64,000 nt of DNA. Source: Lepidodermella squamata. Lineage: Eukaryota; Animalia; Gastrotricha. The notes below the pieces were generated by a model. It saw only the letters and a program-made list of their open reading frames with translations. It ran no database searches and had not been told where the DNA came from. The stretch lies in assembly GCA_047495785.1 (NCBI GenBank), contig JBLDXI010000024.1, positions 1 through 64,000 of the forward strand, in the 5' to 3' direction. Shown here piece by piece: positions 1,603 through 26,187 of the stretch. The stretch's first letter is position 1. The number at the start of each line of letters is the position of its first letter. Position numbers and translations under genes: made by a program.

Positions 1603-1698
1603 ACAGTAGCTTCATCTAGCTTGCTCTTGTGATTTCAATTACCCCGTCTAAATCACGTTATACTCTTATTCAAATAGATATTTATTTCTTTTGAGAAA

Positions 1699-3946
1699 AT
1701 GACCAAGTCATTCACGGAAGCGGCCATTTCGGCGTACAATGCTATGATCAAGATTCCGCAGGTGCTGGGCGGCCGGTTCGTTTCAGCCCCGTCTTTGGCG
1801 ACGATTGATTTCAAGCAAAGATGTTTACCAGCTGCTGAATTCGAAAATTTCCAGCTGACAGCCAATTTCAACGCTGATGCCAAGCCAGAAGGCACCTGTT
1901 CAATCCTTGGCCAGCCGGTGCCGACCGGAAAAAAGTAAGGAAAAAAGTCTTATTAATATTAAGGAAGACTTCATCCGCGGCTTCCTTTTTTTAAAGTGCG
2001 CTATTTATTTCGCCGTCTGGCAACAAGCAGATCTCGCTGAAAACTAGTACCAGTGATGCTAAGCAGCAATTTTTGCAGTATTGGAATGCAAATCGACTCG
2101 AATACACTGTTGATTTGAAGGCGCTCGACCTGCATCAGCAAGTCGTTGAACGAAGTTGGTTTGTATTTCTTTGTTTTGATTCTAAACCTAATATGCTGTT
2201 CTTGTAGCTCCTTTCCACGCGGTTAGCTGGTCCCCGGACGAGCGATATTTCTTTTACTTAGCCGAACGGAAAGTACCGAAAACCAAGTCGTTTTTCGATC
2301 AAAAGCCTGCACCAAAGACCGGTGCGGATGATGTTGTACCAGGAAATGAGTACAAATACGTCGAGGATTGGGGCGAGCAGTTGACTGGCATTTCTAAAAC
2401 CGTCATCGGAGTTTTTGACTCGTTCACTTACACGACGAATGTCCTCGGGTTTGACGGAGGTGAGGATAAATGCATTACGAAGTTGACGGCCAACCCGGCG
2501 AACCCTGATGAGCTCTACGCAATTTTGCATCATCTGAAGCCGTATCGAATCGGCCTCATCTACTGCACCCAGCGCCGTTCTGATTTAGTGCGCATAACTG
2601 GCTGGCAGTCGACGGAAACGCTGAAATCGACACCGGTATCTTCGGAGACGGAATATTTAGCGATTTCCGATGTCTCAGTCTCGCCTGATGGTAAGCGATT
2701 GGTTTGGCTGCAGACCAAAGCTGGCGGTCCCCACAATCGAGCCTTCGAGCTGTGGACTGCCAATACCAGTGATGTAGCAGGCACCGCTCGCCAAGTCACC
2801 TCCGTCAAGGCTTGCCCACTCTACTTCGACTCGAATGGTGCTTTCCAGCGCAATTGCTGGGTTACCGATCACTCGATCGTAATTCAGTCTAATCGCAAAA
2901 GTCAAGTCGTTTTGCTTTCAATTGACATTGATTCTAGCGTCGTCGCAGATATCAACGTGCCGAGTGCTAAATCTAACTTGTCTTCGTTCAATTTGTTGGA
3001 TATTTCCAAGGAAAAGCAGTTACTAGTGCTTGAATCTTCGCTCGGTGCTGCACCATCTATTCACGTTGGAACTCCAAATGGAAATGCGTTCAATTTCCGT
3101 CGATATGCGGTGTTCCCAGTTGACGATACGTACCTGGAAAGCAGCATCACCTGGTCGTTGAAGACAATTACCTGCTCGAATTTCGAATGCCAATACATTG
3201 TTGTCGCGCCGAAAGGTTCCAACGCTAACATCCCACTTATTGTGCTGCCTCATGGAGGCCCTCACAGTGTGATCACCACGTCTTATGCTGAAATCGCTGT
3301 TGCCCTTGCGTTGACTGGCTTTGCTGTTTGCATGCCGAACTACCCGGGTAGTTTGGCATTCGACAGCCTCGAGGCTTTACCCGGTAATGTCGGTAGCCTG
3401 GATACCGAGGCTGTGCAGCAATGTGCCAATGAGTGTTTGGCCCAAAACTCGAATTTTGATAAAAACAACGTTTACATGTTCGGCGGGTCTCACGGCGGCT
3501 TCATTGCCCTCCGCCTGATAGCAGCTTATCCGGATTTCTACCGGGCCTGTGTCAGCCGCAACCCGGTCGCCGACTTGGCGCAAATGGTCGGTGTCAGCGA
3601 CATCCCTGACTGGGTTTTCGTGGAGTGCGGTTTACAACCGAGCCTCGAAGGTTTCATCAACATGGCCGATATTACAAAGCCGGAGGTTTTGGCCAAGATG
3701 AACGAACAAAGTCCGGCGCGTTTTGTCGGTAAAGTCAAATGCCCGTTGTTGATGGCACTCGGTCGCAATGACCGTCGCGTGCCGATGTCACAAGGGCTGA
3801 ACTACTGCCGGATGCTACGCCAGTCGAATCCTGATATTCCGATTGAGATTTTCACGTACGAGGATGATCACAGCCTCAATTCGATCAAAGTTCATTCCGA
3901 CGTTTTTGTCAACGTTGTTCAGTGGTTTAACCGCTATAAAAAATGA
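1699..3946 (+). CDS. APEH: Acylamino-acid-releasing enzyme (APEH) paralog 2, canonical catalytic triad
   Basis: Three exons (introns 1935-1996 and ~2155-2208). Motifs SPSG..KQQFLQYW, YVEDWGEQL, PHGGPHS, GGSHGG (Ser), NDRRVP (Asp), EDDHSL (His). Confidence 0.93.
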
Positions 3947-4121
3947 ACAGTTTAACTTGACTCGATAGTAACTGTTAGCTGATTCTTGAATGCTTTCAAA
4001 TCATTGGATGATTCAGTCTATTTTCTCCGATTCTAATCAAACTGGTGATTTTTCGCAATCTATAGTTTCTATGTTTTTATAGATTTTTTATACTTGAATA
4101 ATCAAAATTCTTCCGACTGAA

Positions 4122-4565
4122 ATGGCGACGATTTCAGAAGAGCAGAAGTACGAGTTCGAGGAGACTTTCAATTTGTTTGACACGCGTGGCGATAAGAAAA
4201 TCTTCGTTCGCGACGTAGGCGAGGTTCTTCGCGTCGTTGGCACCAATCCGACCGAAGCCGAAGTTCGCCGGGCCAGCGGAACCATGAACCCCGACGATCG
4301 GATAACATTTACGCAGTTTCTGCCTATTTTGCAAAGCATTATGAAAAGCCAGGAAACACCGAGCGTTCGCGAATTCGCCGATGGTTTCCGCGTTTTCGAC
4401 AAAGACCTCAGCGGGCTGATTCCATCGGGCGAGCTGCGTCATTTGCTCACGTCTCTGGGCGAACGTATGACCGACGAAGAGGTCGATGCGCTATTCCAAG
4501 GCCACGAGGACAAGGATGGCAATATTTGCTACGAAGAGTTCGTCAAAGCGATCGCGAATAGCTAA
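4122..4565 (+). CDS. Myosin essential (alkali) light chain, Mlc-c/MYL6-like EF-hand protein
   Basis: 147 aa single-exon ORF with F-x-LFDTRGDKKI, VGEVLR..GTNPTEAEV, ITFTQFLPILQ, ELRHLLTSLGERMTDEEVDAL, GHEDKDGNICYEEFVK. Confidence 0.92.
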   Translation: MATISEEQKYEFEETFNLFDTRGDKKIFVRDVGEVLRVVGTNPTEAEVRRASGTMNPDDRITFTQFLPILQSIMKSQETPSVREFADGFRVFDKDLSGLIPSGELRHLLTSLGERMTDEEVDALFQGHEDKDGNICYEEFVKAIANS

Positions 4566-5335
4566 ACATTTGCCACTTACAGTTTTCATCATCCAAATCA
4601 CACTGCAATTTTTAAGTCTGAACGCATGCTCTTGGAATAGCTGCTTGTATTACTAACTTTTCTCTTTTTTGCATTTTCATCTGAGAAAACTTGTGGGAAT
4701 TTTTTCATTCTCTTTGTGTTCAACGTGCTATATTATTATTATTCTACTTTGAACGATCGCTTATGTACATCAGTCAGTTATATAGTTGCGCAGATGTTAC
4801 CGGTACGCAAATATCTATATTATTACTACTACTGTATGAATGCCATAGAATGCGTTTGAGTTGTTGAAAAATTTGCATATTATGTGATCGAATTTATACC
4901 TAGTAAAAAATCATGTAACGAAGCTGTTATTATTTCATGGCTCATGCATGCGTGTGCTTTATCGCGAAATAGTCAGTGCCTCGATCGAAAAATGCTTCCG
5001 TATAAATCATTATTATCTCAGAAACTGAGTAGAAGTGACCACGTAGTCATCCTGCTTCTGGTTTGTTTTACAGAGTACAGGGAGAAATCTCGACTTGAAC
5101 TAGCAAACTGGATTTTCTCCCTTTCAGTGTTATTTGTGAAAAACGAAAATGAAAATTTATTATATTGTCGTCTTCTTATTCTACTATTCAATTATTTCTG
5201 AGATTGCATTGCAAGAGTCGTATCAGAATAAAATAAACCGCTTGTGGTGCTTTTAACATTGTTTTCCGATTTTAGTATTTTTATACCATATCCCATTTGC
5301 CTCATTGTTGTTGGGAATACAAGCAAGCTTGTGAT

Positions 5336-8300
5336 ATGGCAACGACTGCCGCTAATTTCCCCCGACTTTCATTGGCCCTGAGGTCCAATATTGGATCTTT
5401 ATCGTACGACAGCGTGAATGACGAGGACGCAAAATTGTTTGCAAAGCGGCAATTATTACTGAGTTCCACGCCGAATGGGGCACTCACCCTGAAAAAGCGC
5501 CTTGAATGGCGTCAAATAATCAGCACTTTCAAATCGACTATAGGCGAGCGAAACGCTGAAATCTGGCAAAAGGCCGATGCAGGATTGCAAGAGCTGCTCA
5601 AAGAAAGCCGATCTTTGCTAAATGAAGACACGGAAAATTTAGCCGCTTATTGTTTGTATTTGTTCGCCGATCGACGCGGCATGGTCAGTCCTGTCGATGT
5701 AGCCGATCTGAAACGAGTTTTCGGCATCGCAGATTTATCATCGAGCCGACCGATTCGAATTTCAAAATTAGTCCACGAACTCGTCAATGAAACCTTCGAC
5801 GACACTGAGCTGCTACGGCGACGTCTTTTGATTGATAAGGTGGATGAGCTGAACCTACCGGAATTTGGAACTCGACTCCAGGTTCAGGTACCTTCGTTTG
5901 AAAATCCATCAATTTCAGACGCTTTCGACCAGCGGGACGCGGCGGTTCTCGAGCGGCTAATCGAACAGCTGATTGGGAGCTGCTCTGGTCGGAAAACTCG
6001 ACTTTCGACTTCCATGACGTTCGAACATTCCTCACTTCGCGAGCTGGATCAGCAACAGGAGCAAGAAGCCGCATTTTCCACAAGGTTATCCGACTCGTCC
6101 GAGTTCGGCCCAAACTGGCTGCGAGATCAAATTTCTACAGTTTTACCGGACGCAAGTTTGGCTCAACAAATAGCTCAAAATGTCATCGACTTGCTTGTTT
6201 CGAACCGCTCAGATGAAGAATTGCAATCCCAATTGCTCGATTTGATCGGCTTCGATGGGTTCGAACTGATATCTGTTATAATTAGCTGTAGACAAAGCAT
6301 TGTAGCAGCTGCGAATAAGAAGTCAGCCAAGGTATTGGAGAACCTCGGAGTGAATTTGAAAGCTAGCGCAAAAGTACCTCGCGGAGCTGGGGGTGTTTCA
6401 ATTATCACCAAAGATGATTTGGAATACGAGCGAGCTGTGAAAAAAGCGAACGCTGCCGTTGCGAAGGAGAATGCTGCTGCTTTCAAGAAACTACAGGAAG
6501 TTGCCGGAAAATCTTCCACGGAATTTCAAGAGCCTAAACTGTTGAAATCTCTCATCGGCGCTAACGTAAGTGGCACACCCTTGCACAAATATCCGTACGT
6601 GTTCGACTCGATGGCTGAGGTACATCGAACCGCGTCTTTCATCGCTAATGTTAAGCTATTCCTACCAGTCGGTTGTATTAAAAAAGAATTCAAGACATAC
6701 GAAGAGCTAACGATTCCACCGGTTTCGAAGAACGGCGGTGGAGAAAATTCAAGCATAAAGTCGATCGCTGGGGTAGGGGAGCCTCCGATCCTGGTCAGCC
6801 AATTGGAGCCGTGGGCGAGGAAAGCTTTCGACGGAACAAAAAAGCTGAACCGAATTCAATCAGTTGTCTTCGATTCAGCGTTCAATTCTAACCAAAACCT
6901 GTTGATTTGCGCCCCGACCGGTGCTGGTAAGACCAATATCGCCATGTTGACGATTTTGCATGAAATCGATCAGAATCGGGATGAACTGACCGGTAGGGTG
7001 CGGCTGGACAAGTTCAAAATCGTTTATGTTGCGCCTATGAAGGCTCTCGCCGCTGAAATGACTGCGAATTTCGGCAAACGACTCGCATACCTCGGCATGG
7101 AAGTTCGCGAATTGACAGGTGATATGCAGCTGTCTCGCGCGGAAATCGCCCGCACTCAGATGATAGTCACTACCCCGGAAAAGTGGGACGTCATCACGCG
7201 AAAAGCCGTCGGCGATACCGGTTTCACGCATTTAGTTCGCCTTCTTATTTTCGACGAAGTCCACTTGCTGGCGGACGACCGTGGTCCGGTCATCGAAACC
7301 CTGGTCGCCCGTACGTTGCGGCAGGTTGAAACCTCGCAAAATATGATTCGAATCGTTGGTCTCTCGGCCACGCTGCCGAACTATATCGACGTCGCCAAGT
7401 TCTTGCACGTCACTCCAACTGGGCTGTTCTTCTTCGATGGTCGATTTAGGCCTGTGCCGTTAACTCAGACTTTCATCGGAGTGAAAAGTGTCGATCGAAC
7501 CCACGAAATGGTTGCTATGAACGAAATTTGTTACGAAAAAACTCTCGAGCTCGTGAGACAAGGCCATCAAGTAATGATTTTTGTCCATGCGAGAAACGAG
7601 ACAGTGCGAACTGCGACCGCAATGAGAGAAATCGCGAGAAATAACGGCGATCTAGAGCTGTTCAGACCCGAATCGAGTAAAAGCCTCGGAGAAGCCACTC
7701 GAATTATCACAAATTCGAAAAACCACAAACTGAGAGAGTTGTTCAGCGATGGTTTTGCGATGCATCACGCCGGTATGTTGCGGCATGACCGCAATTTGGT
7801 TGAGAGATACTTCAGCGACGGGTTGATTCGGGTACTGGTTTGCACGGCCACTCTGGCCTGGGGTGTCAATTTACCCGCCCACGCTGTCATCATCAAAGGC
7901 ACGCAGATTTACGACGCGAAACACGGCGCTTTCGTCGATCTCGGAATTCTTGATGTGATGCAAATTTTCGGCCGTGCCGGTCGTCCTCAATTCGACACGT
8001 CCGGTCTCGGTATCATCATGACGAATTACAGCAAGCTGAGCAACTACCTGTCTCTGCTCACCCATCAACACCCGATCGAGTCGAAATTCGTCGACTGCAT
8101 CGCCGACAACTTGAACGCTGAAATCGCGTTGGGGACTGTTACAAACGTCGAGGAAGGCATAAAATGGCTTCAGGACACGTACTACTACACCCGCTTGCGG
8201 TCGAACCCCCTTGCGTATGGGTTGACTATCAAAGACCTGGAAAAAGACCCGACTTTGTATTCGCATTTGAACGGAGTCTTAGTTTCGAGTGCTAGTCGAC

Positions 8301-11300
8301 TCGAGGCGGCTCGAATGATCCGTTTCATGCGAAATCAAAACGGCGTTGGTGGTGATTTTTCCTCGACCGATCTCGGCCGCACCGCATCGCATTTCTACAT
8401 CAAGTACGATACGGTTGAAATCATCAATGAAAAGCTCGACTCAGTTCTCACGGATGCTGATGCGTTTTCGCTCATCTCAAAGGCCGAAGAGTTCAAAGAT
8501 ATCAAAGTTCGTGACGAGGAGATGGAGGAATTGGACCGTCTTGTCGCGGACGACTGCCATCTACCGGTGGATGGGGGTGCCGAGAATACCCACGGCAAAG
8601 TCAATATTCTACTTCAAGCCTTCGTTTCACTGTCTAGAATCGAGTCTTTCTCACTCGTGTCTGACATGTCGTACGTGTCGCAAAACGCGGCTCGAATCTC
8701 GAGAGCGTTGTTTGAAATTTCGCTGCGACGAGGAAGTCCGCTGCGAGCCGGCCGGTTGCTCACTGTCAGCCGCTGCCTCGAACGACAATTATGGCCCTTC
8801 GAAAACCCGTTGCGCCAGTTTTCATCCCATTTCCTGGGCCCGGAAATTTTCCAGAAGCTAAACGCTGCTCGCATGAATACGATCGAGAAAATTCGAGATG
8901 CGGACCCGAAAGAACTCGGTGTCCTCATCAGGCACCCGAGAAATGGTCCCTTGATACATCAACTGGCGATGCAAATGCCTCGCCTAGAGGTTGAGGTAAG
9001 CTTTGACGAAAGTTATTATACTATTTAATGAGTTTTGATTCACCAGCCTACTATTCAACCCATCACTCGCCAAGTCGTCCGAATTCGTCTTTCGATTTAT
9101 CCCGACTTTCATTGGTCTGACAAAGTTCATTTGGTCGGAGGTGGTGAACCGTTTTGGATCTGGATTGAAGGTAATTTTTACTGAATTAAGTTATTTTTTG
9201 CTGACTATTTATCCTTTAGACCCTGATCATGACCGCATCTACCATCACGAGTACATAAATGTGACGAAAAAGCAGGTTCTCCGCCGCGAGGAGATCAATC
9301 TTGTTTTCGCCATACCCCTAGCTGAACCTTTGCCAGCTCAATATTTGGTGAAAATTTCGCCAGATCGCTGGCTCGGCTGTGATTCGACTGTTCCGATCTC
9401 CTTCAAACATCTGATGTTACCTGATGTGTTTACGCCATACACTGAACTGCTACCACTGATGCCTTTGCCAGTCACGGCATTAGGGCGTGAAGAGTATCAA
9501 CGGCTGTACAGATTCACGCATTTCAATCCGATCCAGACCCAAGTTTTCCACTCGCTGTACCACTCGGACTGCAATGTGTTGGTCGGCGCTCCGACCGGCT
9601 CGGGTAAAACCATCTGCGCCGAGTTGGCCCTTCTCCGGCTTTTCCGCACTCAGCCAAAGATGAAAGCTGTATACATCGCTCCGTTGAAAGCCCTCGTCCG
9701 AGAGCGCATGACTGATTGGAAAGAGCGAATTGAAGGTCGACTGAATGGCCGCACTGTGGTCGAAATGACCGGAGACGTCACGCCCGATTTGCGGGCTTTG
9801 ATGGCGGCGGACGTAATTATCACCACGCCTGAGAAATGGGACGGCATCTCCCGAAGTTGGCAAACAAGGTTCGTTTAAGGTGGATTTTATTAAAAAAAAA
9901 TCATTTTTTTCAATCTAAAACAGGTCATATGTCCAGTCTGTTTCCCTAATTATCATCGACGAAATCCATTTACTCGGCGAAGACCGAGGTCCTGTTCTCG
10001 AGGTTATCGTCTCTCGAACCAATTTTATAACATCCCACACCTCGGCTGGTGTACGAGTTGTCGGCCTCTCAACCGCACTGGCCAATGCTACGGACCTTGC
10101 CTGTTGGCTGAATGTCCCGACTCAAGGTCTGTTCAATTTCCGCCCGTCAGTTCGTCCTGTCCCGTTGGTGTGTCACATCAGCGGCTTCCCGGGTAAACAC
10201 TACTGCCCGCGTATGGGACTGATGAATAAACCGGCCTTCCAAGCGATTCGCCAACATTCGCAGAACAAACCAGCGCTGATTTTCGTATCGTCTCGTCGTC
10301 AAACTCGCCTCACAGCCATGGACCTGATCGCGTACCTGGCTGTTGATGGCAACCCGAAACAGTGGGTGCATATGCCTGACGACGAACTGGACGCGATTCT
10401 TGAAACGGTGAAAGATGCCAATATGAAGCTGACTTTATCTTTCGGTATCGCCCTCCACCACGCCGGTCTGCATGACAACGATCGCAAAATCGGCGAGCAG
10501 CTGTTTGAGGCGCAAAAGATTCAGGTTCTGATTGCTACTTCAACCCTGGCGTGGGGTATCAACTTGCCGGCGCATTTGGTCATCATCAAAGGCACCGAGT
10601 ATTTCGACGGCAAGCAACACCGCTATGTCGATTTTCCGATCACCGATGTGCTGCAAATGATGGGCCGAGCTGGCCGTCCGCAGTACGACCAAACTGGCAC
10701 GTGTTGCATTTTTGTGCAAGACATGAAGAAAGATTTCTACAAGAAGTTCATCTACGAGTCGTTCCCGGTCGAATCGTGCCTGCTCGCCGTATTCGCCGAC
10801 CATTTGAACGCCGAAATCGTCGCTGGCACGGTTGCGACCCGCCAGGACTGCATCGACTACATCACCTGGACGTACTTCTTCCGCCGCCTCATCCGCAACC
10901 CGACCTACTACGGCGTCGAGGACATCAAAGCCGAGTCGATTAACAAATTCCTGTCGACCCTCGTGTCAAACGCGTTGAACGAACTCGCGTTGTCCGGCTG
11001 CGTCAAAACACCTGAAGATGGACCAACTGGTAAGGTCGAATCGACCTTCGCCGGGCAAATTGCGTCTTTCTATTACGTCCGGCACGAAACCCTGCGGTTG
11101 TACCTGGGTCGGTTGTCAACAGGCGATCTCAGTGCCCCAGAGTTGGTCCAACTGCTAGCCGAGTCGCTGGAATACGCCGAACACCCGGTTCGCCACAACG
11201 AAGACGGAATGAACGCCGATTTGGCCCGTTTGTGCCCTCACCCGATTTCTCCGCCTGAATCGTTCGACTCGCCACATACTAAAACCTTCCTGCTGCTACA

Positions 11301-12174
11301 AGCTCATTTCTACCACATCGGCCTACCGATCGCCGATTACGTCACCGATCAAAAGTCGGTACTCGATCAGGCTATCCGTCTGCTTCAGGCGATGTTGGAC
11401 GTCTGCGCCGATCGCGGGCAGTTGTCGAATGCGCTGACTGTAGCCACCTTAATCCAGTGTGTGGTTCAGGGTCGCTGGTTGGAAGACGACCCGTTGATGC
11501 AACTTCCGCATGTTGTGCCGGGCCCTGTTTTATCGGCTTTCGGCGGTCGAACTTTGCCGGAACTTGTTGCGACGTACCACAAGTTCCAGCGGCTGGACGA
11601 GTCGCAGTCTGCGTCTGTCAAACGCTACCACCTCGACGCTGTCGAACTGGACCACGTGCGGCAGGCGCTGTTTCAAATGCCGATAGTCGGCGTGAAGCTC
11701 AATCTCTACCCGTCGTCGCCGTCTAGTAAGGGTGTGTCATTCGAAGTACCCATCTGCTTCCCGCAAACTCCAGTGCAGCAACGGGAATGGATCACAGTTT
11801 CAGCTGGCAGTGAGTACGTTCTATCCGTATCACTTTCTCGCCTCAACAGGTCGAAAAAAATCGGCGGTTCCATGAATTACAAGGTTCACGCGCCTGCTTT
11901 CAGCAAGCCGAAGGATGAGGGCTGGATATTGGTGATGGGCGACTGTGACCGGGGTGAGCTGGTTGCCCTTCGCAAGGTTCAAAGTGCGATCAGATTGACG
12001 CCCGATTCTACGAAGCAGTCTCTAGCTTTTGTCACGCCTTCGACACCTGGTCGTAAAATTTTCTCGTGTTTCGTCATCTCTGATGGTTATCTGGGCTTGG
12101 ATCAGCAATACGACCTCAATCTCGATATTGTGCCAGCCGATGGGGCTGCGAAATCAGCTCCTGAAGAACTTTAA
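5336..12174 (+). CDS. ASCC3: Activating signal cointegrator 1 complex subunit 3 (tandem Ski2-like helicase cassettes plus Sec63 domains)
   Basis: N-terminal PRLSLALRS as in ASCC3. Cassette 1: APTGAGKT/DEVH. Cassette 2: APTGSGKT/DEIH and GFPGKHYCPRM. C-terminal YLGLDQQY. Introns 8996-9046, 9171-9219 and 9869-9923 join the ORFs in frame. Confidence 0.95.
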
Positions 12175-12559
12175 ATTTGAGCTGTAAAATATTATTCCAG
12201 ATTTAGAATTGAAAAATGTCGCCTTAATATTGGTGCATGCGAAATTTAAGAGATAAAAAATAAAATGAGCTATTATATCGATTTCAAGTCTGTATTTTTC
12301 AAATGTAAAAAAATGAATCAAGTTGTGCATCTTTTCCGAAGAGTGCACTTGGCAGCAGGGTCCGGCAGAAGTTCTGAAGACGCCATCCTAATTATCTCAA
12401 CCGCCGTCATTAGAAGTCCAGTGATCACTCAATTTATCCCTCACCGCTTTTCAATGATATTTATTCGTCACTCGAAGAGACGCTAATTAACAAACTGCGC
12501 AACTGAAAGACTTGCGATGAACCGTCCCCATCAGTGCTGTTTATTTATTTATTATTACA

Positions 12560-13732
12560 ATGCTTTGCATCAAAAAACGGTCGAAAAGCTTCAAATACTC
12601 AGTTTCGCAACGGGCCTACTTGGCTTTATCCCTGATCGCTGAGGGCGGTAATGTGAATAAGGTTGCCGAGAATTTTCACAGGCTGTATCCGCAAGAGTTG
12701 CCACCATGGCCCACTACTATGACTCGAAACCTAGACAGGCTGATCGAAACAGGTGACGATCTTTCCATTATTTCAGCTTCACCAAAATTATTCGCTTCCC
12801 CATACTAAAATCTAGGTAAGTTGGAAGATCGTGATCGCAGTGGCCGACCGCGAACAGCGTGCACGCCGGAAAACATGGCGGCGGTTGGCGAATATCTGAA
12901 AATTTACCCTGATGTCTCGACTCATCACATAGCGCTGGCTCTTAAATTTTCGCATACCTCCGTTTTGAAAATGTTTCATCAACTCGACTTATACCCCTCG
13001 CATTTCAGCGAAAATTTGTGGCAGGGTGACGCTGAACTCCGCGCCGAGTTTGCGACGTGGTTTTTGAAGCAGCATGAGAGTGATCTGGGCTTCGCATCGA
13101 GAATCATCACATCCGGAGCTTGTCGTTTCGACCTTAATGGCGCAGTCCATGCAAAATCAAAGAGCCATTGGGCTGTGCAAAATCATCACGCTCTAATTTC
13201 TGTCAAAGAGAGAAGCCCAACGCAAGTCACTGTGTGGTGTGCTATTGCGCATGATCGTATTATTGGACCCTATTTCTACGAAGAGAACGTCACTGCTATT
13301 GAGTACTTGCATATGCTGGAGAATTTCCTGTGGCCACAGATTGCGAATAATTACGAAAAGCCAATATTCCAGCAAAATCGTGCGTTACCGTTCAATTTTT
13401 TTACGACTTCGGCGTGGCTCCACTTCCGATTTCCAAATAGTTGGATTGGCCTAGATGGACCAATACAATGGCCCACTCGAGCTGCGGATATGGCCGTACC
13501 TGATTGGTTCCTCTGGAAGCACTTGGAATCTGAAGTACACAAAGATCCCCGGCCTACGACTTCGAACGAACTGCGCGATCGAATCAGAACTACTTGCCGA
13601 GCCGTAACGCCCGAAATTCTGGCTGAGATTCGGGAGGCGTGGGTAAATCGTATTGAAGAGTGTCAACGAGTTGGAGGTGGACTCTTCGAACATTTGTTGC
13701 AAAAATCAGCTAGCGCATCCTCCAAGCCTTGA
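12560..13732 (+). CDS. Tc1/mariner (DD41D, rosa-like) transposase-derived gene, intact ORF but catalytically degenerate; probably domesticated
   Basis: Intron 12753-12815 restores ETG|KLEDRDRSGRPRTA (HTH linker). Motifs VWCAI..DRIIGPYF, YLHMLENF, WIG..GPIQWPTRAADMAVPDWFLW. Asp1 is Gly (TSGAC), Asp2 is Asn (FQQNRA), 41 residues to the retained Asp3. No flanking TIRs seen. Confidence 0.88.
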
Positions 13733-14144
13733 GAGCTATATGATACAACTCTCTATATTAGAATCGCTGATCACTAAAATAAAATGAATTCCGAGTCCCT
13801 GTTTATTGTCTTTGACCATGCGTCTCATATACTGATATGTACCTAATTAGAGTCCATTTCAATTTCACGGCCAACTTATAAATGAAACCTGATTCAGAGC
13901 ACCCGGATTCATACAATTCTGTAAGCAAATCATGATCCACTTCGCCTATATATTATTCATGCCATCAACTTACTCATTATTTGCTGAAATAATCAGAAGT
14001 CAATCGCCGGGATAATTAATGTCGCCGTGCGCGAAGGCGCCGCACGCGCTGTAGTGCGGCCCATCATGGCACCGGCGTGCGCGTTTACACACGACAGGTC
14101 GCCTACCTGCTTCAGCAACAGTGCGTGAATTTCTTCAATTGAAC

Positions 14145-15614
14145 ATGTATGATTATCAGAATCTGCCAAGAGCGTTCGCGAAACGGCCCGCCAAGGAACC
14201 TGATAACAGCCAGGCCTATGCGGCGTCTGATGAAATAGCTTCGCCTGTGATGTTCGTCGTCCAGCCGATTCCTGTATTCACCCAACAAATGCCGCCATTT
14301 ATGCCGATGGCTTTTCAGCCATCCTGTGAAGCTGATTCAGAACCTGTTGGGATCGCAAGTCAGATACTCGCTGCGTATGGATTTACGGCGTTCACGCCCG
14401 AGGCCGACAGATTTGCGGAGTTGGTTGTTCAAGATTTTATGCGGCTTCGGGAACAGCTTAATTGCAGACCTTCTTCGAGCGGCGGCTCGATGAAACCTCT
14501 CAACTCTGAATATTTTGATGAAGTGGCGTCGGCTCAAACAGGCGATAGTGAAAAGGCAGAATCGCTTCCCTCGGATCAGCCGCCATCGGGCCAAATCGAT
14601 AATGGCATGCCCAACGCGTCTGTATTAAACGGTCTGTGTCAGCCGTTTCGGCGCCTCGATCGCAATCAATTTGCGATGTTGGAGAGGGTGCGTGTGCTAT
14701 TAATTTTTCGCTAGTCACCAGCCGTTTATTGTTCACTGATAGGAGTTTGATCGATGCGGCAGAAACCCGCAGTCGGACTGCATTCCTTCGATTGCCTTGA
14801 AATTAGGAATGTCACCAAGTCGAGTATGATACGCTCATCGAATCCGCCACGTTGTAAATTTTGTCTCGTCAATGACAGGTCCGATTTTTGTTGCAGTCAA
14901 GATTGCCGACAGCGTCCAAAGTTTCAAAGCTAACACGGTTTTTGCCTAGTGCATTGGCGTCGCAATTCGCTGCCTCTCATTTGGTTGTTCTGGAAAGGGT
15001 GAGTTGCTAGCGAAAGGATCGTGGGGCACACGTGACATTTTATTTTTATTTTTTTCAAGGAATACAAGGGCAATCGGTACCCTGAGGAAGAAGAAATTTG
15101 CGAAATTGCAGATGAAATCGGTCTCAAAATGAGCTTGGTAATTTCGTAAGCTTTGATTCTAGTCTCTTAGGGAATCTGCATATTGCTGCGCATAAAAACA
15201 AATCGGTAATGATATTACCGTTGCAGCCGAGATAGTCAGTTCGCCACCTTGGAATCTTGGAATGCTATTTCAAATGCTCAAATTTATATATTATCGAAAT
15301 TTAAACAGGTGAAGGCGTGGTTTGATTGCCGCCGCCTACAGGATGATATCACTGAAACGACGAAGCAGTCCAAAAATTGTAAGGAGCCGCTTGAGAAAGA
15401 AGCCGTAATCAGGCTGGAAAAGGTTTTGAGTTATCATCAATATCATCAATATCTCTAGTAATAATATTGCGTTCAGGAATTCGCCAAGAGCGGGTCGCTA
15501 CGCCGTGGAGTTGCGTCGAAACTTGGCGCTCAGCTCTCAATGTCCCCTAAAAAAATCGCAGCATGGTTCAACCAGCGCCGCTTGCGTGAAATCAGCAGAA
15601 GTAAAGCAAGCTGA
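14145..15614 (+). CDS. Divergent triple-homeodomain protein (array gene A)
   Basis: Six exons give HD1 (NQFAMLER|EFDRCGRNPQSDCIPSIALKLGMSPSR|VRFLLQSR), HD2 (SHLVVLER|EYKGNRYPEEEEICEIADEIGLKMSL|VKAWFDCRR) and HD3 (EAVIRLEK|EFAKSGSLRRGVASKLGAQLSMSPKKIAAWFNQRR). Stop TGA at 15612-15614. Confidence 0.8.
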
Positions 15615-15730
15615 TAGGGACCTATTCAAAACATTAAACTATGATTCCGATGAGAGTTCTTGATAAGCAACGATCGAGTTCCCAGGTTAATTTTTTACGC
15701 GAATATCTTCCAGTTGACTAGGTTGGGAAA

Positions 15731-16391
15731 ATGAACTTCAATCCATTGGGAAATTTTTTATCTCCGAATCCTATGATGCCCTTCACGATGCCGATGCCGC
15801 CGAGTTTCCAGCAGCCAGTAATGCTGGTGATGCTGCCACAGATGGGAGTGATGCCGAACTCGCTTTGGCCAGGCAATGCAGTTCCTCAGCGCCAGCAGTT
15901 GCAGATACAACAGGCCCAGCCAGCCGAGCCGGTCCAGCCAACGGTTAGCCTGGCGGAGAGTTTGTTAGGGGCAGCTGTGGATGCATTGGACGAAGAAGAA
16001 CGACGGGTGCTTCAGCGAACTATTGATGAGCTCGAGTCTATCAGAAGCCGAAAGAAGAAGAAAGCTGAGCTTGCCCTTTCAGTCGAGACCACTGCCATCC
16101 AGCCAGTCGAGACGCGATCTATCGAGACCACAGCTGCGCCACCTCGCAAAGGCCGAGGAAGGCCGAGGAAAATGGACTTGGATCGCTGGGAAGCGGAGCG
16201 GCGCCAGTGGGGTCAAGTAAGCTTGGAGGTTGTATTGTTGACCTTTTGCTTGAATTTCCGTCTTCCAGCAGCGCAAGCATGTTCATGGTGGCGGACGAGG
16301 TAGCGGCCATAGTGGCATGTCCACGTCGACACAGCCTCGAAGTCCGATCGTTGAAGACGACGAGTCTGAGGTTGAAGTGGAGAGGCGATAG
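15731..16391 (+). CDS. AT-hook protein with M/P/Q-rich N-terminus (array gene B), no homeodomain
   Basis: KGRGRPRK AT-hook. Intron 16217-16268 leads to exon QRKHVHGGG...EVERR* (stop 16389-16391). Could instead splice onto the 16514 acceptor and fuse with gene C. Confidence 0.6.
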
Positions 16392-16516
16392 AGCTTGCAG
16401 CACGTTTGACTACATAATACTAATTACTTGAGATATTATCAGGATTCTATCCACTTGTACAATACATTTGTATCGATTCGTTGATTCGATAAAATTTTAT
16501 TTTTTTGAAGTAGGAA

Positions 16517-17545
16517 ATGTATTCTAGCGTGACAAACCTAGGTGATGAGATGCCCGCCCCAAAAAGTAGAGAGGAAAGGGCTAGGGCGCCGTTGTTCGAA
16601 CTACAGCGCCGTATTCTGAACAGCCCGGAAATCCTACAAAAACTAATGGAAAGATGCACTACTGACACGCCTCGAGACATTCTTTCGATTCCCGAAAACA
16701 GCGATCGGGTGTTTGATTCTCCCAAGCCTGGTCTCGACCTGCCCCAGAAACGTGGCCGCCCTAGGAAGCAGTCGAAACCGGAGGAAATTGTTCCCAAGCC
16801 TGCTCTTGCCCCGCCCGGCAAACGCGGCCGCCCTAGAAAGCAGGAGAAAATAGGTCCCAAGGCGGCGATCGTATCAGCAGCGCCCAATTCAACAGTTGCT
16901 GCGCTTAAAAACCTCGGACAACCTCTGGTACCTGGTCAGGTAAGAGTGCTAAAATCGGAGCCTTCTTTGAAGCGCGAAATACATCAACCGAAATATGGAC
17001 GTTCTGAAGCTGCACATGGTAAAGCTTTCCTGTCAAGCCCTTTTCTTCGGCTTTAAGTACCGCCTTTCTTAGTAGCTCATTCCCCCTCAATCGGGATAAA
17101 ATCAAGGCAAGCTGAATCTACGCCAGAATCTGTAAGTGCGTCACTAAGTTTTCCAAATTTTCAAGTCAGAAATATTGAAGGTTCAGCGAAGTTCGAAGCG
17201 AGAGCACAGAATTGTACCGAACTCTGACAAAAATTGGAGGTCTGCATTATTTTCATTAAAGCTTTCTTTAAGGTTCGTGAACTCAGCAGGGTTGAAAAGT
17301 CAACAACAGACAATCGTGCGAAGGTCCGCAGTGGAGAGGCCAGCTTAGGCAAGATTCGAATCTTGGAGGAAGCTTTCAGGACTCACGGCAACCCGCCTCC
17401 GGAAACTTCGAAGCTATTGGCAGCTCAGTTGAACTTGAAGCCCCGCGAGGTTTGAAACCAGCGAATCACTTGAATTTTCTCTAATGAAATTTTTCAGGTT
17501 GCTTCATTTTTCAACAGTCTTGCTCAGAAGAAAAATTTGGCTTGA
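16517..17545 (+). CDS. Double AT-hook plus single divergent homeodomain protein (array gene C)
   Basis: Two KRGRPRKQ AT-hooks. Donor at 16940. Homeodomain KIRILEEAFRTHGNPPPETSKLLAAQLNLKPRE|VASFFNSLA with intron 17450-17497. Internal exon structure between 16940 and 17272 is uncertain. Confidence 0.68.
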
Positions 17546-17650
17546 CTCATGGGAATGATTTGACTGCTAAATCTTGCTTTGCGCATTGCAAACTCTTTTT
17601 TCTCGTCAATATTTCATCCTAGTGTTTTTTTATTAAATTGAAGCTGAAAG

Positions 17651-19063
17651 ATGAATCCTTATGGATGCCGAGATCATTTAACAAATGTGCCGGGGTTGCT
17701 GACGTATGGCATGCCTATGCTGAGGTCGCCGCCGCAATTACATCCTATGTTCGACCCGTTATTACGTCAGCGGCAAGAAATATTGAGCCGCATCGAATTG
17801 TCGAAAAGTTTGCAGCTCGAACAGCAAAATCATCTCGAGCAGATCAGTCAGCTGCAACAGATCCTGGAAATTTCGGAGACCTTACAAAGCCAGCCAACAC
17901 CTTCTGCCCTTGTCTCAACGCCTCAGAAGGCAACGGCAGAAACAAAAGACGGGCTAGAAAATGAGCCGAAAAAAATTGCATCCCCGAGAATTGAAGCGCC
18001 CAAATCTGCTCTTCAGGCTTCAAATAATCAGAAGCCATCGCCTTCTTCATTCACCTTTACGGAATCGCAGAATCGCGTTTTAGAACAAGTATGGAGACTC
18101 GGGAATGTTATGTAAGAATTGCTGACTATTTTATCCTAGGAATATTTGGCCAACAACTGCCCATCGACAATGGAAATGTTGGAGATAGCCGATGAACTGG
18201 GAGTTTCTGAAAAAGAAGTTTGATTTTCTAAAATTATTCACGCCTTGGCTCAAATATCCCACAGGTTGAATGCTGGTATCGCTGGAAAACTAATGCATCG
18301 AAAGTGAAAACGCCGTCTGACAGCGAATTTTCCGAGTCTGAACTGACCGTACTTCGCATGGAATTCAACAAAAATCCTTACCCCAATCCTTCAAGGATTC
18401 AGAAGCTGGCGCAGTTTCTCGATATTTCGGTTGACAGAGTAATTTTTTTTCATGTCGCTTTATATTTTATCATTCTTGTGGAAATTGCAAACAGCTTGAG
18501 CTTCGTAATGATTTCTTCTATGATTTGTTGCAAAATCAGGGGATTTACGAGCCCTTAGCGGTGTTAACAATTAACACTATTTACTCATTTCACAGGTAGA
18601 AAGTTGGTTCCTTTCTGAAAGCAAACCAGTGATTGCTCCTGGAAAAAGTGTATCAATCGATCGCGAGAAGAAATCAGAAGTCGAGGCCGTTTCTAAGCAT
18701 GAGGCACGCCAGGAACTTGAAGCAGTCGTGCCGAACCTCGAGAAAACTGGACAGAAGAAGAAAAAGGTAGTGAACTCACCCAGGCGATCATCTCTCAATT
18801 CAACTTCGATCAACTCGGAGTTTCGATCCGTCCGACTCAATTTAAGTCAGCACTTCGAATTGTTGCACGTATTTACTCATTTATTCTTCACATTTTCGAG
18901 AGTAATCTGCTGAATTTTGATTTATGTGAAGGAATTCGCCTATGACGCTATGCTGACAGAAACTCGTAAAACTGAACTCGCTAACGATTTGGGCATGCCA
19001 GTAGGCTACATTCAACAATGGTTTGAAGGGCATGCAGGAAAGACTAGAATTTTGTGGTCCTAA
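17651..19063 (+). CDS. Divergent triple-homeodomain protein (array gene D)
   Basis: HD1 FTESQNRVLEQ|EYLANNCPSTMEMLEIADELGVSEKE|VECWY; HD2 FSESELTVLRMEFNKNPYPNPSRIQKLAQFLDISVDR|VESWF; HD3 QHFELLH|EFAYDAMLTETRKTELANDLGMPVGYIQQWF. Stop TAA at 19061-19063. Confidence 0.82.
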
Positions 19064-19223
19064 TCACTCATCAGCCGTTCTACATTAGAAAATGTTTAAC
19101 TTTTTTGTCGATTTTTCGTTGCATGAATGAGTCTTACCTCCTACATGAGTCTTTCATAATATTGTACATAGTTTTTCGCATTGGTCATTTAATGATAGAA
19201 TACTTGCCATAAAAAGATTCCGA

Positions 19224-20029
19224 ATGGAAAATTCTTTCGAATTTGAAACCCCTGAATCGGCCTATCTGAAGCATGTCGGTTCCAATGAAAACAGTGGTGC
19301 CGATTCTTATAACAAAGGAGTATCTGAAAAGGGCTCGGAATCAATTGAAAGCGACAAGGGTTTGATTGATAGCGCCATTGCGGAAAATGACAGTGATGAT
19401 GAGGAAGATGAAGATGAGATTCGTGCAGGAAAATTGCTGCGAAACAGCCTCATGTCCGATGATGATGACGACGATGAAGGATCTGGACTAGAATCCGGTG
19501 AATCGAGTGGCGTTGAATCGAGTGGCATAGAACAGGTAGAAAGGAGCGCAAAACGCGCTGGCCAGTCATCTGTTTCATCCAGGGTAGCTGCGAAGCGAAA
19601 TCGAACTTACAACGTAGCATTGGTTGACGATCCCCTTTTAACTGAGCATCAGGAGATCATGCTGATTCAGGTATGTTATTGCTTTGGTTGGTTTTACAAC
19701 TTGTATATCTTGAATTTTCTCAGGAAGCTTCACTTGGAGAGATTACAGCAAAGCGCAAATCCGAACTCGCCCAATCTTTTGGTGTTTCAGAAGCAAGAAT
19801 CGATGATTGGATCGATAAAAACAACCGTTTACTTTCGGGTGGACGTCGCCGGCGCGCGGTCGCGTTTTATAAGGAAGAAGAAGATGTCTCTGGCGCGGAA
19901 AAAGACGATGATGATGACGCAAGCGTCGGCGAGGAATCCGAATCTGAGGAGGATGACGATTACGATGATGGTGATGATGATGATGATGAAGAGGAAGATG
20001 ATTACTCGCCGAACATTCGCAAACGTTGA
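19224..20029 (+). CDS. Highly acidic protein with one very divergent homeodomain (array gene E)
   Basis: Intron 19671-19723 joins LTEHQEIMLIQ|EASLGEITAKRKSELAQSFGVSEARIDDWIDK, flanked by long D/E tracts on both sides. Confidence 0.7.
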
Positions 20030-21056: not shown

Positions 21057-23200
21057 ATGAAGCATTCCCGTTCGTACTCGTTTCATCGCTCTTCATCCTT
21101 CTCTGTTTCCTACGCATCTGTGCACCGGCAAAGTACATCTGTGCCAAGGCATCTAATATCAAAGAGCCAAGATCTAGACCAAGATCATCGGGCATATGAG
21201 GATCAAATTTCAACCGAAAGTGATGCCTCGGAGAAGAAAGAGGATAAGGTGAAGAATTTTTTCCACATCACCGTTATCCTCGTCGTTATTCTATGCTTCG
21301 GAATGCTCTTCTCGATATTTGCCCCGTTCTTTCCTGCAGAAGCTGCGAAAAAAGGCATGTCTCCTACCATTGTTGGCCTTCTGTTTGGAGTTTTTGAGCT
21401 TGTGGTATTCCTATTATCGCCTGTATGGGGTATGAAGAGTTTGAACTGAACGCAATATATATTCATGCTACCAAAACAGGTGTACTCGCGCCGAAAATTG
21501 GCTTCAGGTTTTTGATTGCATCCGGAATGTTTCTAGCTGGAGGAGCCACTATTTTGTTTGGGTTCTTGGATCGTGCACCAGAAGGGTCAGTTTACATAGT
21601 CATGTGTTTCACATGCCGCATTGTTGAAGCCATTGGAGTATCAATGTACATCACAGCCGCTTTCGCCTATGGTAATTTTAGCCTTAAGTTGAACCAGTAA
21701 TGCATACTTTTGGCAATATTAGGATCATCGCTTTATCCAGATGACGTTGCTTTCATCTATGGGTTGCTGGAGACGTTCAACGGGGCTGGATTTATGATCG
21801 GTCCACCTCTTGGTGGACTTCTCTTCAAGGTTTTTGCCAAAATTACAGTATTTCATGGCTATATGGACAAAATATCCTTTCGTTTTAGGCAGGAGGTTTC
21901 ATTTTACCATTCATCTCAATCGGTGCATTTATTCTGGTGCTGGGAACTTTATCCGCACTTATCATAAAACCGTCGACTGAAGAGGAAAGCAGCAACAACT
22001 TGTTAGGTCCCCATATTAAGCTGATTTATTCTGACGGTTTACTATTTCAGGTCCCCATGGCTTTTACTGAAGATGCCTTTGGTGATTGTCCTTGGTGTAA
22101 GCGAAGGTAATGCCCATTCTATAGTATATTTGGGGTTAAAATTAGACATTATGTACAATCAGCGATATGCTCGATGATCTTTGCGTTCCTTGATCCTACG
22201 TTGTCCATTTTTTTGGAAACGATCGATATTACGGATCCAGTTGTTGTTGGTGCCATGTTCATGGTGTGCTCGATTGCATATACAATTGCGTGCCTTGTGA
22301 CCGGGAAAGCAGTCGAAAGGTTCAATGCGCCATATCTATTCATGATTGTTAGTTTTATTGATTTTACGCAAAAATATTTTTTGACCGATTTCTTTGTAAT
22401 TCTATTAAGATGGGGGCTGCTTTGACGTGCATAGGATATTTGCTGCTCGGTCCTTCTCCGCTTACTCCATTTTATCAGCCAAATGAAGCAACTGTTATTG
22501 TCGCATGCTCTATCGGGTTCGCTGGGCTTGGCTTCTTGATGATCCCGATTCCCAAGCTACTAACTGAAACGCTTCAAGATTACGGCTTTCCAGATACAAT
22601 TGAGACTAATTCGTTGGTTTCAGGTTCATTAAAGATTTCTGAAAATTAAGCTAGATTAACCTAGATAATAATAATTTTAGGCGTCTACAATTGTGTCTGG
22701 TACTTTGGCTCTTTTTTGGGTAAGAATTCCTTAGTAAATTCACAGTTACTTGGTATTTATCTGAATATGTCTTAGGTCCAACAACGGCTGGAGCTATGGT
22801 TGAAGGATTGGGCTTTTTATGGTCATCGACTATCATGGCTATGCTGGCAGCATTTGTTTTTCTTCTTCTTATCATCACTGCTATAGTCATGCATTCTGAT
22901 GCGTGGAAAACCCGAGGACAGTTTAGGTACGCGATATTCCTGACTGACAGCCAGCGCGAGGAACAAGACGATGACGATGAGCCATCGACGCGTAAACACA
23001 GCGATAAGGATTGGACTAGTAGCAGCGCGAGCGATCGTTACAGCAAAACAGACGACGAGAGTGAATTAGAGATCAGCGAGTTACATGACTATGTCGGCGA
23101 ATTGCGAGGCGTCGAAGCGGCACGCCGGTCAACTCGCACGAGAAATTACGGTGCCACATCGCACACAGAACAGGCTTTGGTCGCTAGCGCCAGTGTTTGA
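21057..23200 (+). CDS. SLC18B1: MFS-type vesicular amine/polyamine transporter SLC18B1-like
   Basis: Multi-exon gene with APFFPAEAAKKG, GMFLAGGATILFGFLD, RIVEAIG, GLLETFNGAGFMIGPPLGGLLF, FLDPTL, LLLGPSP, GPTTAGAMVE. Confidence 0.85.
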
Positions 23201-23300
23201 GCCTACGTTAAATTCGGCTTGCTTTGATTTATCGTTTAAATTAATTTTGATTCTATGTCAAAAATGATAGGCTTTTATATATTAACCATGTGATAAACCA

Positions 23301-26187
23301 ATGTTATTGGAAGACGCCGACGAGGGCGAGTCCTACTTGGACTCGAAGCACGAGAAAACGCCTCGTGCTCGTGACAAGCCGTCTAGTCCGACGAAATATG
23401 GGGGTTCCTATCGGTTTGGACTGGGTAGCAAAAAGGCACCGCCGCCTAAACCGCAACCCGCGCAAAATAAAGGCATGACGAAATTGACAATATCGTCTTC
23501 CACTTCTTCGTCTTCTCTTCATCTACCGCGATTGGTAGCCACTAACAGTACGCCAGCTATTGCTGAAAAACCAGGAAAAATCAAGTTGAGTGATCAGAAG
23601 CTACCCGAAGTTGGTGACTCTGATGATGATTGTGCAGTTTGTCGCAGCCAACGCGAAGCAATAGAAGCAGCAAAACAGCAGCGAGAGCTGGAAAAGACTA
23701 ATAAAGCTAACAAGGCTATCAGCTTCGTGGTTCCGCTCGATGATGACGACAAGAAAAATCTGTCCAACTCTAATTCCACAACAAAATTTGCCCTGCCGCC
23801 AGATGAGGATAGGCCGAAAAAACCTAAGACTCCAGCGCCAACCCGTGTGAAAAGCAGTAAATTCTTAGCTCCATCTTCCTTAGCGCAGCCTGATCCAACG
23901 CCATTGGAAATCCGTGAACCTAAGCGAAAAGAAATGTCTTCGCGATTCGAAATTCGATTCGACGACGACGAGGCTGAAGATTCTGAGCCTAAAAAATCAA
24001 CTCGTGGATCACAACTAGAAGCCACCCCGGTGGCATCCGATCATTTGAAAACCTCAACAAGTCTACCTATAATAAGCAGCAACGTCGTGACTACGCGTTT
24101 GATTGACACGAGCTTCGCGAACCCTGCTAATATGCCTTCGCGAGTGACCGTAATACCGCCATCTTCGACTCCGACGAAGAACATCGGACAAGCGCAACCG
24201 TCTTTCACCGTGCCCCCTCGGCTTCTGACCGGCCTTAGCCCGAAAGTCTCAGCCGCCGCATTGGACTCGGACTTGGCGATCCGCCTTAAAACTCTAGTTT
24301 TCGGGTCGCCCTATCGGAAGGCAACTGATGCCTGGCGCCTGCAATCGCTGTCTTTCGCCGCTGAAAACGGCAGTGCTGCAGCTGCGCCTCGATTCGTCAT
24401 AATTCAACACGCCAACACGGGCTCGGGTACAACCGGCTTGCTCGCTGTTGTCCAGGCTGAGCTTTTGAAGCAAATTCTATACGTTACCGGTGTTAATACG
24501 ATTGATCATAAACAGACTAGCTACGGCAAAGAGTCGGATCCATTCACAACTCTGCGGCTGCTGACGAGGTCGCAGCGTACTGATGCTCTCATTGCAGCTC
24601 TGACGGAAATAATTTGCCGATCAGCGGTTGCCCCGAAGTCACCATTCGTTAAAGGCTACCGAGCAGGTGTTCCTGCCGCGGAGAACGTCGCCCGAGTTGT
24701 CATCCCATGCGGCCGGCGGGTGTTGCCTGTTGATGGGTGCATAGCCGACGACGGCATCACCGAGAAACTGCTCGTCTTCACATTTCCGATGGGCGGCGAA
24801 GCGGCCATTGCGAAAGAACTCCGCGCTTTCTTCCGCCAACACCTGGTGCATTTCGACACGGACGGCTCCGGTGGATGTCTTTGCCTTTTGTACTCTTTGG
24901 TTCTTTCACGCGGCATTGATACGTAAGTCATGCGAGACAAATATTATCGCCTTAATGAATTTCTATCACAGAATCTACGCCGATTTTGATGAAGCTAACT
25001 GCTCTTCATTAATTACACCGGATTCCTACACATCCACGGTATGTGCACCCTATTATTAAATAATATAAAAATGTCGCGTTTATTCCGCACAGGAAGCATT
25101 GAATCTGCTTCTTACCGGTATAGCCTCCTCCTATTTCTTCAACGACGATGTTTATATGACTGTTTCCTCAAACGCCGCCAATTCTCTTTCTTCCTCCTCC
25201 TCGGCGTCTTCAATGTTATCGCCTGTCCCGTCAGGGTCACCTTTACTTGCATCAGACTCAAACAACAGTAACAATAATGGGGCATTATCTGCTGACAGCG
25301 GAACCGGTGAAGAAACAACCGTGCGGCATCTTCGAGGTATCCACCGCCGGTCAGATATTGGGTTGCTTACGCTCAGTGAGTTTTACGCATCGAGTGCGGT
25401 CAGCGAATCTAAGAAGCAAGAGCAGCAACTGGAACAGCTTCAATTTGCCAAGGTAAGCTGAATAATTCAGCTCCGTTTTAGTGATTTCTCGACATGAATA
25501 CCTATAAAGTTGAGACAAAAGGGTCCAGTGAAACCAGGTGCTATGTCGATTTCCCCGGACGAAGAACTGAGGCAATTGAGAGAAAAAGTTCTCAAGGTTT
25601 GATCATCGTTAGCTCGTTGAAGTGAAACTCAATAATCATTGATGTGCCCGGCATTTAACAACTAACTTGTACACATGCCACGCTATATTGTTCAATGTTA
25701 GATTCGATCGACTGGTTTCAGTTTATTTTCATTGTTTTTCCCACATGTGTTTCAGGTTGGGTCCTACTTGAAAACGCCAAGGTACCCGATTTGGGTGGCA
25801 GCTGTGACGCAGAGCAATACGCGATTTTGCGAGATTTACTCGACCAACATCGAATTGATTTCGAACTGGCGAGCCGAGCGGCTTTTCGACCTGTTCTGTC
25901 TTGACGCATGGATCGTGCCGGCTGATAAGAAGAAACTACCGTCGACTATGACGCTGTCCAACTGCCTACAACCGATGCGTTTGCGAATGGACGCTATCGA
26001 TCGGCCTGATTTGGGGACAGCTTCTTTCGAAATAGGCGGCGATTCCGGTCCGGAGAGTGACGGAGACGAGGAGCAAGGCGTGTTCGGGACTGCACCAAAA
26101 CAAAAGTCGCCGCCTCCGATTGAGCTCGTCTTACAGACCAAGTGGCCTGGTGCAGTTATCGATTACCTGACGTTGCCTGGCGCGTAG
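23301..26187 (+). CDS. MINDY4: MINDY4/FAM188B-like deubiquitinase homolog, predicted catalytically dead
   Basis: Long disordered N-terminus, then LKTLVFGS, GLLAVVQA, DGITEKL, LLYSLVLSRGID, NLLLTG, RSDIGLLTL, VGSYLKTPRYPIWV, TKWPGA. GPCG is GTTG and ESHF is NTRF. Confidence 0.82.

Follow-up and report, generated by a model that had tools for sequence, protein, structure and literature searches.

A compact cluster of five orphan homeobox-descended genes with Asn51-free homeodomains in the gastrotrich Lepidodermella squamata

Five neighbouring genes with homeodomains and AT-hooks

The first 64,000 nucleotides of contig JBLDXI010000024.1 from the gastrotrich Lepidodermella squamata (assembly GCA_047495785.1), the whole stretch analysed and referred to here as the window, contain five co-oriented genes on the + strand between positions 14145 and 20029. 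These genes, G1 to G5, were delimited by a three-frame reading with boundary checks. Their types are those proposed earlier from the letters alone (the sequence-only reading): two triple-homeodomain genes, an AT-hook gene, a gene combining AT-hooks with a homeodomain, and an acidic single-homeodomain gene. None of the eight homeodomains carries the asparagine at position 51 (Asn51), the near-invariant adenine contact of homeodomains, and it is argued below that most of them may serve in protein or chromatin contacts. The genes and their exons are as follows, with the homeodomains (HD) numbered within each gene.

14145..15614, + strand: G1, 357 amino acids (aa), isoelectric point (pI) 8.1; an N-terminal region without known domain, then three homeodomains; six exons (14145-14687, 14743-14823, 14879-14998, 15060-15137, 15309-15422 and 15477-15614), frame open, GT-AG introns
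15731..16391, + strand: G2, 202 aa, pI 8.1; two exons (15731-16216 and 16269-16391), one GT-AG intron, frame open
16517..17545, + strand: G3, about 261 aa, pI 10.3; two AT-hooks followed by a single homeodomain; preferred model with four exons (16517-17018, 17073-17131, 17273-17449 and 17498-17545), open, the middle exons uncertain
17651..19063, + strand: G4, 364 aa, pI 6.1; a long helix (17756-17887), then three homeodomains; five exons (17651-18088, 18140-18217, 18265-18438, 18596-18868 and 18932-19063)
19224..20029, + strand: G5, 250 aa, pI 4.1; acidic disordered arms on either side of one homeodomain-type domain; two exons (19224-19670 and 19724-20029)

The five coding sequences remain open over a total of 14 introns, and each terminates in a stop codon. 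Every intron has GT-AG borders; eleven are 47-62 base pairs (bp) long, and the other three measure 141, 157 and 171 bp. In G1 an alternative, pyrimidine-richer acceptor exists at 14897, and its use would delete helix 3 of G1-HD1. The gaps between successive genes amount to 116, 125, 105 and 160 bp (G1-G2, G2-G3, G3-G4 and G4-G5), in agreement with the 105-160 bp given by the sequence-only reading. Near the ATGs of the downstream genes, a pyrimidine- or T-rich run together with an AG is found at 15700-15730, 16495-16516, 17625-17650 and 19205-19223, an arrangement that would fit leader trans-splicing of an operon-like unit.

Outside the homeodomains, G3 contains two AT-hook cores (16742-16768 and 16808-16846), for which the Pfam AT_hook model (PF02178) gave 16.9 bits against a cut-off of 17.4. 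G2, in which no homeodomain was found, has one AT-hook-like GRGRPRK core at 16136-16177, recognised by pattern alone and without a Pfam match. For exon 1 of G4, AlphaFold2 predicted a 44-residue helix (residues 36-79) with a predicted local distance difference test (pLDDT) score above 90, followed by disorder and then by helix 1 of G4-HD1. Two further candidate features were rejected. A Met/Pro-rich N-terminal motif, by eye common to G1, G2 and G4, aligned locally no better than shuffled sequences, and the 'LREQLN..PSSSGG'-like stretch at residues 88-132 of G1 (14407-14541), which matches repeats of two long repetitive database proteins, P0001 and P0002, with summed scores of seeming significance, was judged a repeat-inflated chance similarity.

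Homeodomain ancestry and DNA-contact residues

Every homeodomain in the cluster is cut by an intron, and the Pfam Homeodomain model (PF00046, cut-off 22.9 bits) was therefore scanned against single exon pieces. The eight domains, their helix 3 residues, net charges over 60 positions and Pfam matches are listed in gene order.

14634..14926, + strand: G1-HD1, a degenerate homeodomain; S51, no Trp48, Pro at 54, net charge +6; introns at domain positions 18/19 and 44/45
14945..15356, + strand: G1-HD2; helix 3 with WF, D50, C51 and RR, net charge -6; Pfam match at 15060-15137 (G1 exon 4), 18.8 bits, model positions 18-40
15369..15602, + strand: G1-HD3, the most canonical domain; helix 3 with WF-N50-Q51-RR, net charge +9; Pfam match at 15477-15611, 21.2 bits, model positions 18-55, ungapped
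17318..17542, + strand: G3-HD; helix 3 with FF, N50 and S51, net charge +5; intron at 44/45 only; Pfam match at 17276-17452, 20.7 bits
18035..18312, + strand: G4-HD1; helix 3 with WY, R50 and W51, net charge -4; Pfam match at 18140-18217 (G4 exon 2), 13.5 bits
18307..18643, + strand: G4-HD2; helix 3 with WF, L50 and S51, Pro at 55, net charge -2; Pfam match at 18265-18435 (helices 1-2 alone), 29.6 bits, above the cut-off
18815..19057, + strand: G4-HD3; helix 3 with WF, E50 and G51, Gly also at 54, net charge -2; the protein ends just beyond; Pfam match at 18929-19060, 19.2 bits
19617-19846, + strand: G5 homeodomain-type domain; W48, I49, D50 and K51, net charge -4

The Pfam scan identified six exon pieces, one of them above the cut-off, but the exon pieces of G1-HD1 and G5 gave no match to the model. 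All six matching pieces are in register, and their exons end at positions 17/18 and 43/44 of the model. The claim of the sequence-only reading that introns hide the domains is supported. In homeodomain numbering, which is set by the gap-free alignment of G1 exon 6 to the Pfam model, introns at 18/19 and 44/45 are common to G1 and G4 and occur partly in G3 and G5. Because the exons end at these same two domain positions, a common descent of the homeodomains is suggested. In six domains the 18/19 intron interrupts the motif Leu-Glu-x / Glu-Phe/Tyr. The hydrophobic core (L16, F20, W48, F49) is also maintained, W48 being present in six of the eight domains and replaced by F in G3-HD and by L in G1-HD1.

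Comparison with known structures pointed in the same direction. A profile of three uninterrupted helix 2-3 pieces matched the homeodomains of DUX4, engrailed and CDX in the PDB with an E-value of 2e-7, and G4-HD2 matched engrailed, DUX4 and HESX1. For a 45-residue piece of G5 the top PDB matches were all homeodomains (engrailed, DUX4 and CDX, with E from 0.001). The AlphaFold2 model of G5 exon 2 shows a helix-turn-helix and, after it, an acidic tail that is disordered; in a Foldseek search with this model the top rows were homeodomains, none of them significant. G5 also gave weak Pfam matches to CENP-B_N and HTH_28. A transposase origin of its helix-turn-helix was considered and rejected, being outweighed by the homeodomain-only top PDB matches and by the similarity to G4-HD3. 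The weakest call is G1-HD1, whose sole support is an hhalign comparison of G1 exon 2 with the family helix-2 profile (66% probability, E 5.6e-5). Judged from sequence, the cluster genes are of homeodomain ancestry. Neither orthology to nor a signature of any named homeobox class (ANTP, PRD, TALE, CUT, SINE or others) was found, and the PDB matches of the cluster homeodomains are generic (engrailed, DUX4, CDX, NANOG), with weak E-values.

Among the genes themselves, exon 4 of G1 and exon 2 of G4 share 50% identity over 22 residues, and exon 5 of G4, which encodes part of G4-HD3, shares 36% identity over 25 residues with exon 2 of G5. The N-terminal exons yielded z-scores of at most 2.3 against shuffles and are hence no more alike than shuffled sequence. 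Neighbouring genes could not be aligned lengthwise, although members of a recent tandem array should be. Since only short homeodomain pieces align, the genes are very old and heterogeneous neighbours rather than recent tandem copies. Of the "tandem array of five" in the sequence-only reading, the five co-oriented neighbours therefore stand, but they are not copies of one another: just the homeodomain pieces of 22-25 residues can be aligned. G2 is tied to the cluster only by its adjacency and an AT-hook.

Typical DNA-binding homeodomains are strongly basic. In the cluster, five of the eight domains are net negative (-2 to -6), and the combination of Arg53 with an overall basic charge is not a general feature of the set; Arg53 is retained by G1-HD2 and G1-HD3 alone, and most of the eight have no basic N-terminal arm. 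All helix 3 strings listed in the sequence-only reading (VRFLLQSRL, VKAWFDCRR, IAAWFNQRR, VASFFNSLA, VECWYRWKT, VESWFLSES, IQQWFEGHA and IDDWIDKNN) were recovered, and position 51 is occupied, in gene order, by S, C, Q, S, W, S, G and K. Residues for standard DNA reading have accordingly been lost, with Asn51 in none, Arg53 in two and a net acidic charge in five of the eight domains. The protein encoded by G3 ends at about homeodomain position 59. According to published work, the exchange N51S abolishes DNA binding (PMC2725295). G1-HD3 is the only homeodomain of the cluster that looks able to bind DNA.

Expression, selection and genomic surroundings

Transcription was assessed with run X1, which resembles complementary DNA (cDNA), is labelled as RNA only by guess and contains spliced contigs. 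The contigs show the junctions 18088/18140, with a GT..AG joint, as well as 18868/18932 and 19670/19724, both with loose ends. The splicing proposed in the sequence-only reading is thereby confirmed at three places in G4 and G5, but the other 11 of the 14 junctions are without RNA support, including all of those in G1. X1 pieces map at low depth to each of the five genes; G2 is overlain by X1 contigs, no coverage was found over 16886-17482 of G3, and one piece extends 10 nucleotides (nt) into intron 4 of G1. At least G4 and G5 are expressed as spliced RNA. Between 14100 and 20060, the majority of X1 contigs are chimeric and turn back onto the opposite strand at a distance of 100-270 bp (at least 15 joints). 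These chimeras look like an artefact of amplified low-input cDNA, and X1 consequently gives limited information on transcript ends.

Between a second run, X2, and the window there are about 93 differences, and all counts given here refer to the best-supported 40 of these. Sixteen differences are synonymous, six non-synonymous and 18 non-coding. With 971 synonymous and 3346 non-synonymous sites in the coding sequences of the five genes, the ratio of non-synonymous to synonymous differences per site (pN/pS) is about 0.11, and the synonymous excess is significant in a binomial test (p = 8e-7). Synonymous and non-synonymous differences number 3 and 0 in G1, 7 and 2 in G2, and 5 and 2 in G4. All three indels lie outside coding sequence. 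Because the differences are mostly synonymous and the indels non-coding, the reading frames and the action of purifying selection are both supported, which in turn supports the conclusion that the cluster genes are real.

Relatives were sought in a protein collection that includes none of the window's own proteins. A word-index search of it returned no homologue for exon 1 or exon 3 of G4. In an exhaustive HMMER search with exon 1 of G1 no homologue was found either; the two matches, to P0001 and P0002, were driven by repeats and attributed to chance. The ESM Atlas gave no usable match for any query, and two metagenome scans gave no relative for any query. One-to-one orthology to a known homeobox family, which would have spoken against the sequence-only reading, thus did not emerge from the protein and metagenome searches.

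The conserved peptidase upstream of the cluster matches named proteins from several phyla at about 33% identity and ENA metagenome proteins at 44-53%. Over positions 1-12174 the window shares its gene order (two APEH genes, an EF-hand light chain and the ASCC3 helicase) with the ENA contigs L003, L004 and L005, metagenome contigs of a related organism in which ASCC3 is 78% identical. The related organism has five APEH paralogues, compared with two in the window. The synteny ends directly after ASCC3. Downstream of this gene, contig L004 contains no homeobox exon and carries Cys-rich, Sushi and CUB genes instead; at the same break in the window lies a transposase-like open reading frame (303 aa, 12821-13732), followed by the homeobox cluster. 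This reading frame matches no Pfam family at E <= 0.01, and terminal inverted repeats are absent from 12400-14200. On the other side, the region 21057-24926 downstream of G5 contains an MFS-type transporter fragment (MFS_1, 24.3 bits, below cut-off) and a MINDY-3/4 deubiquitinase gene (74 bits); with these neighbours, the cluster ends at G5.

Possible functions and relation to known homeobox clusters

The interpretation favoured here, with a confidence slightly better than even, is that of a compact cluster of five spliced, constrained, orphan homeobox-descended genes, in which most homeodomain folds no longer perform standard DNA reading and now act as protein or chromatin adaptors. Standard DNA reading would have been lost in most of them because Asn51 is absent from all eight, most are without Arg53 or a basic N-terminal arm, and five are net acidic. 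By this account the homeodomain folds would serve as protein-binding or chromatin-adaptor modules. The remaining contact with DNA or chromatin could be made by the AT-hooks of G2 and G3 in the minor groove of AT-rich DNA, and by the still-basic G1-HD3 (WF-N-Q-RR), perhaps also by G1-HD1 and G3-HD. The long helix of G4 could mediate oligomerisation, and the acidic G5 may associate with basic proteins, for example histones or the basic members of the cluster. The five products may also cooperate with one another.

Several points weigh against this interpretation. The fold predictions cover exon pieces, RNA junctions have been seen for three of 14 introns and in G4 and G5 only, the estimate of selection draws on 40 of the 93 or so differences in X2, and adjacency is the sole link established among the five genes. 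Moreover, Trp48, Phe49 and Arg52-Arg53 are kept in G1-HD2 and G1-HD3, so that some DNA binding by these two domains is plausible.

According to a rival explanation, the proteins would still be sequence-specific transcription factors. The changed residues 47, 50, 51 and 54 would then represent new specificities, and three domains could read long composite sites, in the manner of poly-zinc-finger proteins. W48 in six domains, in most of them next to F49, R52-R53 in two, the basic character of G1-HD3 and G3-HD and the purifying selection are all consistent with this explanation. It is nevertheless doubtful, given the five net acidic domains, the Pro or Gly in helix 3 of G4-HD2 and G4-HD3, the complete lack of Asn51 and the N-terminal arms, which are mostly not basic. 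That the set consists of remnants of homeobox duplications that are decaying or drifting neutrally and have no function of their own is very improbable. The degenerate key residues, the failure to find an orthologue and the related contig without a cluster at the syntenic place would agree with decay, but the frames are open across 14 introns, spliced transcripts are present, pN/pS is about 0.11 and the indels are confined to non-coding sequence.

A different proposal, compatible with the adaptor interpretation, concerns regulation: the five genes could form one co-regulated unit, either as a trans-spliced, operon-like polycistron or under a shared promoter, with products that join in one complex. 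The common strand, the spacing of 105-160 bp, the AG with a pyrimidine run within 30 nt 5' of each ATG and the complementary features of the products (a helix, AT-hooks and an acidic protein) argue for such a unit. However, X1 contains no spliced-leader or bridging read and leaves two of the intergenic gaps wholly uncovered. The short gaps may in addition be ordinary, because the whole window is gene-dense, and a single unit is on balance unlikely. The most far-reaching version, in which the homeodomain fold has become, in this lineage, a general, Asn51-free protein-interaction or chromatin module and the cluster is a co-expressed, operon-like working set of oligomerising triple-domain scaffold, AT-hook tethers and acidic partner, is quite unlikely.

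The closest known counterpart of the cluster, in kind, is found on chromosome II of C. elegans, where duxl-1 and ceh-81 to ceh-86, like the HOCHOB genes, are highly divergent, often contain several homeodomains and are without orthologues even in close relatives (PMC4448998). The first domains of HOCHOB proteins have an altered helix 3, some of these C. elegans homeodomains are thought to have lost DNA binding, and some of the genes are expressed (PMC4448998). The gastrotrich genes resemble ceh-81 to ceh-86 and HOCHOB in being clustered and highly divergent, in having several homeodomains with an altered helix 3, and in being expressed in part. On the other hand, no sequence relationship to the C. 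elegans cluster exists, none of the homeodomains here has Asn51 and the majority are acidic, AT-hook genes are interspersed, as is an acidic gene with one homeodomain, and the introns lie at 18/19 and 44/45. The "undescribed family" of the sequence-only reading is therefore appropriate for the sequences, which have no detectable relative in the collections searched, but not for the kind. The cluster is a new sequence family, and orphan, fast-evolving homeobox clusters are already known as a kind, since ceh-81 to ceh-86, duxl-1 and HOCHOB have been described.

A functional precedent for a homeodomain that does not bind DNA is HOPX, which has the fold without the DNA-binding residues and acts as a cofactor through protein contacts (PMC9179269, PMC6997107). 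HOPX is a single conserved vertebrate protein of 73 residues, whereas the proteins described here are three-domain, AT-hook-bearing or acidic-tailed orphans. With the mammalian ETCHbox genes (PMC4904359) and the lepidopteran Shx genes (PMC4207634) the cluster has in common that its homeobox genes lie together, are young or evolve fast and do not belong to the conserved families. ETCHbox and Shx proteins, however, have kept Asn51, contain one domain each and derive from CRX or zen, whereas no parent family can be named here. Several homeodomains per protein are also found in ZHX and ZFHX (PMC7144352, PMC2211742), which in contrast are conserved among vertebrates and contain zinc fingers; the gastrotrich proteins have neither zinc fingers nor orthologues.

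Taken alone, the cluster adds modestly to a phenomenon that is already known. Homeodomains of this type, possibly part of a large lineage-specific radiation, would escape standard homeobox surveys, because each domain is interrupted by an intron and the filters of such surveys require helix 3 to match a consensus. In the gastrotrich genome paper (2024, GC 43%), Hox genes alone were surveyed and aberrant homeobox matches were filtered out (PMC11660948). As a conserved module for reading DNA, the homeodomain is the textbook case, and an Asn51-free, mostly acidic set under purifying selection represents a natural experiment on the other uses of its fold. Should the fold have become a general Asn51-free interaction module in this lineage, the proteins would constitute a new functional class of homeodomain proteins that are not transcription factors.

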